Shown piece after piece: positions 22,894 through 28,363 of a stretch of DNA of 64,000 bases (positions are counted from its first letter, which is position 1; each line of letters opens with the position of its first letter). The position numbers and the translations under genes are program-made. Below the pieces are notes generated by a model that did not search any database, was not told the DNA's origin, and was given only the letters and a program-made list of their open reading frames with translations. This DNA comes from Malacoraja senta (lineage: Eukaryota), in NCBI GenBank assembly GCA_038087875.1, contig CM075992.1:1736001-1800000 (forward strand), given 5' to 3'.

Positions 22894-23001
<108 letters not shown>

Positions 23002-23442
23002 CTACAAAACCATGGAGCGGAAAGTTAGTGCGCAGTTACTGACTCGTGTTTCAAATTCAATATAAAGTACAAAACTTTCATATCTGCAGTGCTACTTTGT
23101 CAAGGGTAAGAGCCATTTACATTTAAAATAAAATCTACATTATCAATCCAGTATTCTCCATAAAAATTACTCTTAACACAAAGCAGCAACAATGCAATTA
23201 TACCAAAAAGACTAACATTAATTCCTAAAACCCCCACCCCATATATAGTTTGTCCATCTTACTATTATAGTCATTTACTTAAGTGCTTATTAGCAGCTGT
23301 GCCAAGACAGAAGCTAAGTGTTGCACAGAAATTAAAAATTCCGAAATCAACTCAACACACGCAATTAACAAAATGAACAGAATCAATAATTTTAATAAAA
23401 AACTTTCTACTTTAGACAATAATGTAAGAACAAGATCCAAAC

Positions 23443-23534
23443 CTGGAACCATTTGGCGTGTCGCAGGGACGCCAAGGCGGTTAGGCATTTCTGCCTGTCC
23501 AATACATCCGCAGGCTCACTCATCGTTACTGTTT
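23443..23534 (-). CDS. ILF3: ILF3 coding exon, DZF domain
   Basis: (E)[30 protein letters not shown]; 92 nt, AG/GT. Confidence 0.97.
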
Positions 23535-24697
23535 CTATTGATGGAGTGGAATAAGAAGACAGGCAGTTTGACCAAGGGGTTTCTGTCATGCGGCGGGGAG
23601 CGGCAGCATCCGACTGGGCAAACAGGGCTCCCCACCAAAAGTCAAGTTGCAGTGAAGACTCTCAACATTTCTAATGGATTTACTTTGTTATGTAGCTAAA
23701 TGGGGAGAACACTAGTGTACATCTGGACAATGATCGTGTCTAAAAGAATGTGTACTAATCTGACATTATATTCTGTAATAGGTATCCCTAATATGTATCC
23801 TATATGGCTTTTTAACCCACTAGACTAGTGTTACTGGTGATGTGAGGAAAACAATGTTGTACTGATATGACGTTATTGAACTATCTGATGTTGTTAGTTA
23901 AACTAGGAAAAGGAAACTATCAAAGTAGGCTTGGGGCTCTGTCCGAGGGAAACCCCCGCTGCCCACGAAGGTCGACTGCCCAGGCCCCCATGACAGAGAG
24001 CGTCCAGTTGGTCAAAGGTCCAGCGTCCCTAAAAGAATTGACAAACTAGAAGGCTTGGTAGACGTGATCAAATAGTAAATCCACAGGCAATATCAAAACT
24101 TCAAAAACACCATATAATTGTTTATATACAGTGGGAAACTGTTAAACCGTGTCCAAATGTTGTTACATGTTCAGCTTAAGCCCATTATCTCAGGTCTAAC
24201 TGTTTGGTGCACAGGCTTTCATCACCAAAAGTAAATTAGTTGCATTGTTACATTTCTCAGTCTCCCACTGCATATTCTGAACTTGGTGACATCTGCACTG
24301 CAGCAAAATTGAATGGTCTGGTAGTTCATTACTGACCAGAGTTTCAAATAAGGTCATTTTTATCATGGATATTCTAGAATACTGAGCCCAAGTGCTCAAA
24401 ACAATGCACTGTGTAAAAATACATTGTCAATCACTGCATTAGCAGCACCAATTTTGGAGATGTACCAAGTACCAGATGGTTAAAATCTTAGCCAAATCAT
24501 CTGAAAGTCAAGATCAACCTGGCATCCCCAAAACCACTATAAAATTCAGGATCAAATAGAGACCTGTACCAAAACAGATCATTTCAATGCTGGTATACAG
24601 AAAATGTGCCATGGAATCGAGCATGTATTTAATTAAACTTCCAATTCACTCCTGCAATTAATTCAGAACCCATAAATTCTATTGATGAAAAAGTAAA

Positions 24698-24980
24698 TTT
24701 TAGTTTAGAGATACAGTGTGGAAACAGACCCTGCAGCCCAAACGAGTCTGCTCCGACCAACTTTCACCCATACACTAGATCTATCCTACACACTAGGGAC
24801 AATTTACAGAGGCCAATCAACCTGTACATCTTTGGAATGTGGGAGGAAACTGGAGCACATGGAGAAAACCCATACAGTCACAGGGAGAACGTACAAACTC
24901 CGTACAGGCAGCACCTGTAGTCAGGATCAAACCCGGGTCTCTGGCGTTGTAAGGCAGCAACTCTACCACTGCGCCACCCC
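24698..24980 (-). mobile_element. tRNA-derived SINE
   Basis: Reverse-complement copy of the same family. Confidence 0.78.
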
Positions 24981-25510
24981 TAAATATACTTTGTTCAAGA
25001 CTTGGTACACCTTATTCCAGTTGGAGGAAAGTAACAGTCAAGATTTTTTTTGTCATTAATGCCTTGTTCAGTATATCACCCATGCAATCATTAAATTAAA
25101 ACTTTAGCTATTACTATTCATGAAGCAAGTTAATCAAATTATTCAGATTACACTTGGCTCACGGACTTCCATTCTCTTGCCGTCAAATGAACAAAATGTC
25201 CCAAAATCACTTAAAAGCCCAACCCATTTGAAACTAGTGGTTGGCTTTGCTTTGAAATCTATCAAACTAAAGCAGAGGTGCGATTGCAAAGTTCTGATCC
25301 ATTTGACAAAATATACAAGGCAAGACACCAACAACTTGGTGTAGTAGTCATGTGATGTAGGCCAACATATCGTGAAAATCTTTATTGCAACTCCCCAGTT
25401 TATTTCATACCAGAATATAAAACCAGACCTTCACCCCGTCACAACCAGTTGAATTTGCAACTGGATAGGAAAGTGCCAGACCAATGTTAAACTCACTAAG
25501 CTTTGTAGTT

Positions 25511-25710
25511 TGTGTTAAAGAAGGAACTGCAGATGCTGGAAAATCGAAGGTACACAAAAATGCTGGAGAAACTCAGCGGGTGCAGCAGCATCTATGGAGC
25601 GAAGGAAATAAGCAACGTTTCAGGCCGAAGAAGGGTTTCGGCCCGAAACGTTGCCTATTTCCTTCGCTCCATAGATGCTGCTGCACCCGCTGAGTTTCTC
25701 CAGCATTTTT
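25511..25710. repeat. Penelope-derived short repeat subfamily B, inverted pair
   Basis: Nearly perfect arms of about 70 nt (AAAAATGCTGGAGAAACTCAGCGGG... / ...CCCGCTGAGTTTCTCCAGCATTTTT). Confidence 0.88.
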
Positions 25711-27244
25711 GAAGCTTTGTAGTTTCAAGGATACCTCACTGCATATTGGACTATAATGTCCATTTTTCCCCATTTGGAAGTAAACCCACTGTACAACTAA
25801 ACGCAACATTGATGTTAAAAAGATCCGTCATGATTGAAGATGTGCTGATTCTCCACACTTTGCCATGTGCTTAGACGTAATGAGAATTATTAGCCAGAAA
25901 GACAGATGAGCAATTGCAAATTCAAGATCATTCACTGCTCAAGTCACCAGTAAGTTGTTTAATTTATTACTTCCTTTGTTTGTGTCACTTGCAAAAGTGT
26001 AGCGGAGCTACTTTACAGAGTAGCAATAAGTCAAAAAATTACCACCTTGGGTAGGACTCAATGGTTAAACAATGGCATATGCTGCGCAGTAAAAACAAAC
26101 GTAGAAGATAATGACTCTACATAGAGCCAGACATTATCCAAAACTCTCTGCCAGCCATGTCATCTTTTTCAGATGTTAAGCAAAACAGTGAAAATAAGGC
26201 CATCATTTGCCCAGTATTATACTACACAAGGCCCAAAAAATAGTCATTTTTGCTGCAATGCAAACTTACTTGGGTATAAACCAGTGGCTTTGAACAACTT
26301 GAACACATGCACAATCAAGAATAATTTTCATCATGAAGTTTCAAGCCTTCTGGACAATTTGTGCAGAAGCCTTAAATCACCTTATTAAAACTAGCTTTAG
26401 AGTATAACATTTGGTGTGTATTGGACCATCAAAAGGCTACAATTACAAAGATAACATGTCGAGCAGTTACAGGATGTAAAGCTGCAGTATACTACAGATC
26501 ATGACTGTTTTAATTGCCACATGAGTGTACTTCAAGTTATTCGGCATAGGTAGAAATGTTCATAATCAAGATATCTATGAGAAAATTGTGCAGATTAACA
26601 AACTCATTTCCTCAGCCCAAAATATAGGACATTTGGTACATATTCCAAAGTGATAATTTCAATTAGCCATACAAGTAAAATTGAATAGTGAAAATGAGGC
26701 CGTCAGTTGCCCAGTATTATACTACACAAGTGTTGTTACTGCACAATTTCAACAGATTAATTGATTCTTTCCCTCTTAAAAGTACCCCAGCTCTCTACTG
26801 TATTTGGGTGTACACATTGATGCAATCTCTTCCCATCTACAGACCACCCCGCCATTATGTCTGAAGGAACCAAAGCCCAACTACAACACAAATGTTAATG
26901 ATCAGCATGCGACTTTATACACTAACAAATGCCAATGACCAAAAGCTAACGGACAACTTCCTGCAAACCAAATGGGAATAGAGTCAAAGTGGATTTTCAA
27001 AGCTCTTGGTAAAATACATACCCACCAACTACCAACCAGGTGAACATCTTTTACAAAGTCTGTTTAATAAAAACAAATGCATCTGACCATTACACAATTC
27101 CACTGACCAATAACGGTGGAAGAGCAAGGAAAGTACACCTGACAGCATGGGGATCAAACTAGGAAAGGAGCTCCTATCCAACGCTAATTTTCATTTTATA
27201 AAATTGCTACTTATTAGTTTGCATTCATTAAAGAACGTTCAACA

Positions 27245-27810
27245 GGAATGTAATGCTGAGGCTCAATAATGCACAGGTCAGGCTGCATTTGGAGTATTGT
27301 GAGCAATTTTGGGCACCATGTCTGAGGAAGCTCTGGAGAGGGTCCAAAGGAGGTTTATAAGAATGTTCCCAGGAATGAGTGGGTTAACATATGATGAACG
27401 TTTGATGGCACTGGACCTGTACTCGCTGGAGTTTAAAAGGGAATCTCATTGAAACCTATCGAATTGTGAAAGGCTTGGATACAGTGGGTGTGGAGAAGAT
27501 GTTTCCACTAGTGGGAGAGTCTAGGAGTAGAGGCCATAGCCTCAGAATTAAGGGACGTTCCTTTAAGAAGGAGATGAGGAGGAATTTCTTTAGCCAGAGA
27601 GTGGTGAATCCGTGAAATTCTTTGCCACATAAGGCTGTGGGGGCTAATTAAATGGATATAGATAGATTCTTGATTAGTACAGGTGTCAGCAGTTATGGGG
27701 AGATGGCAGGAGAATGGGGTTAGAAGAGATAGATCAGCCATGATTGAATGGCGGAGTAGACTTGATGGGGCGAATGGCCTAATTCTGCTCCTATCATTTA
27801 TGACCTTATA
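27245..27810 (+). mobile_element. CR1 LINE 3' end
   Basis: Similar to 21336-22157, including the LVRPHLEYC-like region and 3' tail. Confidence 0.85.
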
Positions 27811-28215
27811 ATACATTCAGCAATGACAACAGTAGATCCAACCTACACATCCAGTCTCAATCTTTACCAGACCCTTTTCCTCCCCACAGAAAAACTCATG
27901 TTTCTTCGACATTACTGCAAATTCATTCTTAGACAGACAGTTCTGCATTAGTAAATCTGCACTATGAACTGCAGAGATTCAACAAGTACATCAAGCGTTC
28001 ATCTTCACAAATTTTCAAAACTGACATTTAAAACAAATTCTCTAGTAGGTGTCTTGCTGTCAGGGAGACACTAGGCTTAAGAGGAGCATTAATTACTCAA
28101 CACATAATATATTGCAGTTTTTACCTCAAGACATGACCTAAGAACAAGCTATATTGAAGGCCCAATAAACATTTTATAATGCGGGTTGAAGTTTGCCACC
28201 TACAACCCATCCTAC

Positions 28216-28363
28216 CTCCAGCAGCCTCCTTCTCGAGTTCTTCCCGGACCAGAGGAGAGGTCAGTTTAATCTTCAGGGTTAGTGGTTCCTCTTTGTCATT
28301 CTTTATAATAATCGCTGCATCTTGTTCTGAAGGATCTATTTCATACTTTTCCTTAGTGATGGT
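28216..28363 (-). CDS. ILF3: ILF3 coding exon, DZF domain
   Basis: TITKEKYEIDPSEQDAAIIIKNDKEEPLTLKIKLTSPLVREELEKEAAG; 148 nt, AG/GT. Confidence 0.95.

Follow-up and report, generated by a model that had tools for sequence, protein, structure and literature searches.

Skipping of exon 11 of PTBP1, coupled to nonsense-mediated decay, is a form of autoregulation. In ADARB1, the gene of ADAR2, self-editing creates a proximal 3' splice site inside an intronic duplex, and hairpins in the messenger RNA (mRNA) of DGCR8 are cleaved by Microprocessor. Ultraconserved poison exons of splicing regulators were reportedly described by Lareau and by Ni in 2007. Long-range intronic structures regulating splicing are known as pairs of conserved complementary regions (PCCRs), and the study of these names ILF3 solely in the role of a binding protein (Kalmykova et al. 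2021, PMC8052449). ZFR, a DZF paralogue, is among the genes with ultraconserved exons (Haque et al. 2022, 10.1101/2022.06.15.495552). Here we analyzed an intron of ILF3 in a stretch of 64,000 nucleotides (nt) of the Malacoraja senta genome (contig CM075992.1, positions 1,736,001 to 1,800,000), referred to as the window, in which two complementary islands, A and B, are located upstream of a 92-nt exon. No paper describing this intronic element of ILF3 was found in the literature.

We read islands A and B as the arms of an ancient long-range RNA duplex which masks the branch-point and pyrimidine-tract region of the frame-shifting 92-nt exon, and we would put the probability of this reading at about 0.55. 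That the helix forms and is selected for is considered highly probable.

Translation of the exons placed ILF3 on the minus strand of the window. A library search with the dsRBM1 exon yielded full-length ILF3 proteins, the closest of which (P0002, ILF3 of the ray Narcine bancroftii) was near-identical to the ILF3 of the window across these exons, in keeping with a cartilaginous fish as the source. The identity of the gene and the intron and exon phases, both proposed earlier in a sequence-only reading of the window, were borne out by translation and protein matches. The productive acceptor, given there as 23535, required a small correction: the AG occupies 23536-23535, so that the exon covers 23534-23443 (92 nt). 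Omission of this exon shifts the frame and in the window species leads to a stop 29 codons into the next exon, as judged by translation.

The sequence-only reading had also described two GC-rich islands as collinear reverse complements that are unlike any repeat of the window. Both parts of this description held for island A (24030-23925) and island B (23645-23547): the guanine-cytosine (GC) content was 0.56-0.57 in the islands and approximately 0.35 in the spacer, and each island core was present in one copy in the window. All of the blocks which that reading had named, including the GGCAG/CTGCC blocks, were found where it had placed them. Numbered along the forward strand, TTTGACCAA at 23567-75 is complementary to TTGGTCAAA at 24008-16, and TCTGTCATG at 23582-90 to CATGACAGA at 23989-97; the two helices are here named H1 and H2. 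Additionally, TGTCTT of island B (23561-23556) pairs with GGGACG of island A. Island B was likewise confirmed to lie over the likely branch point and the pyrimidine tract of the productive acceptor. The 3' arm spans -22 to about -110 from this acceptor and thereby reaches into the 5' portion of the pyrimidine tract. Its end is 4 nt away from CUUAU (A at 23552), the only good branch-point motif, with the branch point assigned by consensus only.

For the comparison of ILF3 we used the loci of gar (L001), egret (L002), turtle (L003), wolverine (L004) and bonefish (L007), in total six sequences with the window. Together with the STRBP loci of the chimaera Callorhinchus (L005) and of a tinamou (L006) the complete set consisted of eight jawed-vertebrate sequences. 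Both islands were found in all five other ILF3 loci with 80-87% identity over 66-153 nt, the alignments of island A extending over 86-153 nt. Island A begins with an AG (here referred to as the pseudo-acceptor), and approximately 60 nt from this AG through TCTGTC were invariant in 6/6 ILF3 sequences. Approximately 55 nt of island B up to the productive AG were nearly invariant in ILF3, and the productive acceptor region (23535 to 23563) was invariant in ILF3 and almost invariant in STRBP. In the five ILF3 sequences measured, 452-644 nt separate the pseudo-acceptor from the real acceptor; in STRBP, island A lies 2.6-4.7 kb from the start of the exon. Across the jawed vertebrates sampled, no other non-coding block of the intron is as conserved as the two arms, judged by these alignments. 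Conservation of the islands, on which the sequence-only reading had staked its model, was thus found for both arms in the six ILF3 and the two STRBP sequences.

Many relatives in the sequencing-run index carried the stretch nearly unchanged. Contigs of four putatively RNA sequencing runs (relatives E, G, J and L) were aligned over 23300-24820. In the close relatives E and G neither island had a change, compared with approximately 30 over the next 300 nt upstream. In the more distant J and L, alignment at 85% identity or more was limited to two parts, namely the exon together with island B and island A together with its flank; the spacer was unalignable.

The paralogue STRBP carried the same pair of elements. 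The core of island A was 97% identical over 34 nt in the chimaera and 94% over 32 nt in the tinamou when compared with the shark ILF3 core, and in both loci island B adjoined the homologous exon. The arms are 2.6 kb and 4.65 kb apart. STRBP retains the portion of island A with H1, the linker and H2, without the pseudo-acceptor of ILF3. Furthermore, two short contigs of relative L matched the island cores only, one of which ran into an STRBP exon reading ENFAMKD. Since the element pair is present in both paralogues, it is older than the ILF3/STRBP duplication, which we assume to date to early vertebrates.

Within the cores the arms were complementary without mismatch over 9 base pairs (bp) plus 7-9 bp across the sequences. 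When the cores, delimited as the 34 nt and 43 nt that both paralogues conserve, were shuffled, perfect collinear helices of 9 and 8 bp occurred in 2 of 200,000 shuffles and a helix sum of at least 15 bp in 19 of 200,000; the p value of the core complementarity is approximately 1e-5, conditional on the conservation of the arms. For the five full-length ILF3 regions the RNAalifold consensus was an A:B duplex of 63 pairs, with GGGACG:UGUCUU over the real pyrimidine tract. Minimum-energy folds of the whole regions, including the STRBP regions of 2.7 kb and 4.7 kb, contained H2 in 8/8 sequences and H1 in 6/8, and A:B pairing was the preferred fold whether the arms were 0.45 kb or 4.7 kb apart. The long-range duplex proposed from the window was recovered by the consensus and by these folds in all species.

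An alignment of the arms of all eight sequences gave 58 consensus pairs with 92% of the cells paired, and in 12 pairs both partners had changed. These values were not reached in any of 2000 column shuffles, a control which ignores relatedness. Among the eight sequences the distal helix changed in sequence and retained its complementarity, a signal that stems from few lineages. One-sided changes were mostly G-U compatible on the mRNA strand; the invariant UGUCU, for example, can pair with GGACG, GGACA and GGAUG alike. The sense consensus had -46.5 kcal/mol and 56 pairs versus -40.7 kcal/mol and 42 pairs for the antisense strand.

In the window alone the complementarity is weak, being barely beyond chance. 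The fold of the 541-nt region was not unusual (z = +0.4 versus shuffles). The A:B duplex had -85.2 kcal/mol versus -63.4 ± 6.5 for 500 shuffles (z = -3.3), and at least one of these exceeded it in stability (minimum -92.8 kcal/mol). The score of the local inverted-repeat alignment (25) was equalled by other pairs within the same intron, and by our own estimate a collinear 9+8 match is expected approximately once by chance per 64 kb. The significance of the element is therefore derived from the comparison between species and not from the statistics of the window. In the ensemble of the 541-nt region the pair probability was approximately 1.0 for H2 (23997-89:23582-90) and approximately 0.9 for 23980-75:23602-07 and 23965-60:23615-20. 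Hence, of the register listed first in the sequence-only reading H2 was retained and the distal helices were replaced by the latter two. In one regional fold the H1 arm of island B (23571-23576) was paired with ACCAAG in the conserved flank (24054-24059) and not with island A, which would be a possible competing helix.

If the helix is formed, the region needed by U2AF and U2 snRNP would be hidden. With the acceptor masked in this way, removal of the upstream intron would be slow or would fail altogether (intron detention), or skipping of the 92-nt exon would follow. Both outcomes would introduce a premature stop and lead to nuclear retention or nonsense-mediated decay, and the open form would give productive mRNA. 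It may be speculated that free ILF3 or STRBP, or other double-stranded RNA (dsRNA)-binding proteins or helicases, read the helix as a sensor and set the productive fraction. The helix is plausible as a sensor because two dsRNA-binding domains are found in each of the proteins, ILF3 and STRBP, whose genes retain the element. Knockdown of ILF2 lowered the ILF3 protein and raised the ILF3 mRNA (bioRxiv 10.1101/2022.06.15.495552). This effect fits negative feedback and may be taken as a hint of it.

A more far-reaching proposal is made here only tentatively. The helix would be a dsRNA dosage sensor older than the ILF3/STRBP split, as part of an auto- and cross-regulatory loop shared by the dsRNA-binding family. 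Free proteins, alone or as ILF2 heterodimers, would stabilise the helix in their own and in each other's pre-mRNAs. The stabilised helix would then mask the branch region of the 92-nt exon, resulting in frame-shifted or detained transcripts.

Unproductive isoforms with a premature stop do exist, by skipping of the 92-nt exon in primates and as intron-retaining contigs in the relatives. The 115 short N-terminal ILF3 products of the protein collection included exon-skipped forms (..EKVLAG-GQSQ..), which come from RNA assemblies or are annotated in chimpanzee and orangutan as ILF3 isoform 15/16. Read-through into the intron after the upstream exon was common among these products. Relatives J and L had contigs from which the downstream intron was removed and in which the intron of the islands was retained.

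Several results weigh against a duplex that masks the acceptor. Skipping of the 92-nt exon is documented in primates only. In relatives E and G both introns reached approximately 10-17% of the exon depth; retention there is therefore not specific to the intron of the islands. The energy of the core duplex was only moderately unusual (p approximately 0.003-0.007), and in the cores the antisense strand was slightly more stable than the sense strand. The covariation term of the RNAalifold consensus of the five ILF3 regions was slightly unfavourable (+4.7), and no covariation can come from the helix cores because these are invariant. The covariation signal of the eight sequences came mainly from a G-run in the distal arm A versus a C-run in arm B of gar and bonefish, where the alignment is uncertain. 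Finally, the unpaired parts of island A were conserved as strongly as the paired ones, so that there is constraint beyond pairing too, for example by protein binding.

The equal invariance of paired and unpaired stretches, the lack of covariation in the cores and their folding at least equally well on the antisense strand would all be compatible with islands conserved for other reasons. They might be separate protein-binding silencers or enhancers, or DNA enhancers, and the complementarity a by-product of motifs shared in opposite orientation. The other strand of island A even reads TGGTCAAAGGTCCA, a DR1-like site with the half-site GGTCA/TGACC, which we take to be the nuclear-receptor half-site on the basis of the DR1 consensus. 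However, a shared half-site covers 5 bp and not 9+8 collinear bp, and the distal helix varies in sequence with its complementarity kept. A and B are also minimum-energy partners even over 4.7 kb. Moreover, in two paralogues of very different expression island B keeps its place at the 3' splice site, which fits RNA processing better than an enhancer. We therefore regard this explanation as unlikely.

The duplex could also be real and act, not as a switch, but as a positive or constitutive aid to efficient inclusion of the weak 92-nt exon by shortening the effective intron, hiding decoys (AG 24029) or positioning the branch region. The donor GTTTGG is conserved but weak, and the length of this long intron differs between species. 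In the consensus fold the pseudo-acceptor is buried, and the 92-nt exon is part of the main transcripts in all species. On the other hand, the 3' arm lies over the pyrimidine tract and next to the likely branch point, and a helix in such a position inhibits use of the site in known cases. STRBP, furthermore, keeps the helix without a decoy AG to hide. We consider such a role rather improbable.

In the model of the sequence-only reading the duplex, perhaps stabilised by NF90/NF110, masks the productive acceptor with the consequence that the acceptor at 24028 is used, the product ends ..AAG-GTLDL-stop and the transcript enters nonsense-mediated decay. Its description of the site was correct: ttcttttag/GGACG with AG at 24030-24029 reads G-T-L-D-L-stop (TGA 24014-24012), and the AG, a lead-in with 15/20 pyrimidines and the in-frame TGA are all present. 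None of the six ILF3 sequences differs in the AG or the next 60 nt, and no change in the lead-in is seen from shark to bird. However, at the homologous position of STRBP, which keeps the helix, the AG is absent, and in the mammal (wolverine) the pyrimidine tract of the lead-in is lost by deletion. In the consensus structure the G of the AG and the following bases are paired, and the helix would mask 24028 as well. These three points weaken the model. No convincing branch-point motif was seen upstream by eye. Contigs of relatives E and G crossed 24028 without a branch, although contigs miss rare isoforms subject to nonsense-mediated decay, and none of the 115 short N-terminal ILF3 products ended in GTLDL, where annotations likewise miss such isoforms. 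From the interpretation of the sequence-only reading we accordingly keep the helix and its position and do not adopt 24028 as a regulated poison site, a use that appears improbable. The pseudo-acceptor is more likely a part of the arm which pairs with the real pyrimidine tract, or a decoy. That the duplex serves as a substrate of another dsRNA pathway (ADAR editing or intron cleavage of the Microprocessor type) and not as a mask of the splice site is very improbable: it is a long imperfect helix of 56-80 predicted pairs, within the size range of known editing substrates, but no A-to-G differences were found in the islands in the RNA contigs of E and G, which drop rare variants, and the islands have no Rfam family match.

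Four other candidates were rejected. A cassette poison exon starting at 24028 would have to use the GT sites GTCGAC, GTGGGC or GTTTCC in island A, which are poor and not conserved. At the pseudo-acceptor GG and not GT follows the AG, unlike a recursive splice site. Terminal inverted repeats of a transposon or a miniature inverted-repeat transposable element do not agree with a single copy in the window, a contig depth equal to that of the flanks and the orthologous and paralogous conservation. Finally, a search for known RNA families gave no Rfam match on the islands at E<=1. As for a second helix, inspection by eye showed just 6+4 bp of complementarity between the downstream intron and the flank preceding island A.

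The features of the region are listed in Table 1.

Table 1. Features of the ILF3 region in the window (positions of the 64,000-nt stretch)
Feature	Position	Strand	Remarks
Upstream ILF3 exon (..TITKEKYE..EKEAAG)	28216..28363 (start approximate)	-	Phase-1 end; donor GT 28215-28214; translation and P0002 match
Intron with both islands, 4.68 kb	23535..28215	-	From exon boundaries
Flank 5' of island A (GTCTACCAAGCCTTCTAGTTTGTCAATTCTTTT), rich in pyrimidines and leading into the pseudo-acceptor	24031..24091	-	Cross-species comparison
Pseudo 3' splice site AG	24029..24030	-	First base after it 24028; in-frame TGA 24014-24012
Island A, 5' arm of the putative long-range duplex	23925..24030	-	GC 0.57; conserved in other ILF3 sequences
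Island A core common to STRBP: H1 arm TTTGACCAA (24016-24008), linker CTGGACGCTC, H2 arm TCTGTCATG (23997-23989)	23987..24020	-	STRBP comparison
AT-rich spacer, looped out by the predicted duplex, not conserved	23646..23924	-	Cross-species comparison
Island B, 3' arm: H2 arm CATGACAGA (23590-23582), H1 arm TTGGTCAAA (23575-23567), TGTCTT (23561-23556)	23547..23645	-	Folds
Productive acceptor: pyrimidine tract, candidate branch point CTTAT (A at 23552), AG 23536-23535	23535..23563	-	At the foot of the duplex
92-nt exon	23443..23534	-	Translation
Conserved start of the downstream intron: weak donor GTTTGG, then pyrimidine-rich block ending GTAG	23394..23442	-	Kept in ILF3 and STRBP
Next exon	22906..23001	-	Translation; seen as loose end at 23442 in contigs of relatives J and L

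In ILF3 the flank upstream of island A was conserved between shark and bird, whereas the mammal has lost it by deletion; STRBP of the chimaera has a part of it. In the downstream intron the first 30-48 nt were conserved in both paralogues, and the donor GUUUG was weak but conserved as well; such features are typical marks of a regulated exon. The block at 23394-23442 and its homologues in L001-L007 look like a second pyrimidine tract ending in GTAG (CTTGTTCTTAYATTTGTCTTTAAGTAG) and resemble the 3' splice-site region of the 92-nt exon itself. A pyrimidine-tract protein may bind such pyrimidine-rich regions on either side of this exon. A further stretch of the downstream intron (23074-23109) was conserved in turtle, in egret with 89% identity over 37 nt and in wolverine with 100% over 21 nt.

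Approximately 50 mammalian RNA contigs of Logan (P0505, P0507, P0510, P0512-P0514 and P0516) carried a one-base frame shift of ILF3 inside the 92-nt exon (..ETLSVNDP followed by RTFWTGRNALLPW..), apparently at a run of C. This shift may be a real variant, come from a pseudogene or be an assembly error that recurs.

The intron of the islands also contains a near-perfect palindrome at 25570-25696 (inverted-repeat score 117), with sub-threshold matches to several models of microRNA precursors on both strands (MIR1507, 43 bits versus a gathering score of 73). A very abundant repeat is located at 24677-24872; its summed contig depth was 16,000-81,000 in the RNA-type runs of the relatives, with many joints and loose ends, and translated motifs like those of this repeat recur elsewhere in the window. 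In addition, four short blocks of the intron of the islands (28147-28171, 26415-26451, 26241-26266 and 24292-24312) matched the gar intron in conserved order with 84-100% identity over 21-38 nt. By these alignments, they may be additional conserved elements.

ILF3 (NF90/NF110) has roles in many processes that depend on dsRNA, among them antiviral responses, the biogenesis of microRNAs and circular RNAs, and splicing. The islands define a precise, testable cis-element of approximately 34 + 43 nt which is also present in mammals and is unusual for the depth of its conservation and for its presence in two dsRNA-binding paralogues. If it is true that dsRNA-binding proteins read the helix, this would be a clean case of a family sensing its own class of ligand in its own pre-mRNA. 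If they do not, the helix would still be among the deepest-conserved long-range intronic structures beside a frame-shifting exon.

Compared with the PCCRs, the element likewise consists of two conserved complementary intronic segments, hundreds to thousands of nucleotides apart, beside the splice site of an alternatively used exon. The ILF3 pair is, however, unusually deep, extending to all jawed vertebrates sampled and to two paralogues. With PTBP1 it shares the gene of an RNA-binding protein, a frame-shifting internal exon and conserved pyrimidine-rich intron sequence on both sides, but the repressor of PTBP1 binds single-stranded pyrimidine tracts whereas the candidate repressor element of ILF3 is an RNA helix. 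ADAR2 offers a conserved intronic duplex near alternative 3' splice sites in the gene of a dsRNA-binding protein, and its unproductive isoform lowers the protein output; there the AG is made by adenosine-to-inosine editing, in contrast to the genomic AG of ILF3, for which neither a sign of use nor editing was seen.

The ultraconserved poison exons resemble the locus in the extreme non-coding conservation in a gene for an RNA-binding protein, tied to a splice choice that introduces a stop. In ILF3, by contrast, no cassette poison exon is evident, as island A has no usable donor; the conserved unit consists of the complementary arms, and the documented unproductive event is the skipping of a coding exon. 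DGCR8 is similar in that a dsRNA-binding protein senses a structured element of its own transcript for dosage control, which for ILF3 is a proposal. It differs by a local hairpin in the 5' untranslated region or coding sequence, which is cleaved, while the element of ILF3 is a long-range intronic helix near a splice site. In comparison with these systems, our verdict is that the ILF3 element probably belongs to the conserved long-range RNA structures linked with unproductive splicing in genes for RNA-binding proteins.

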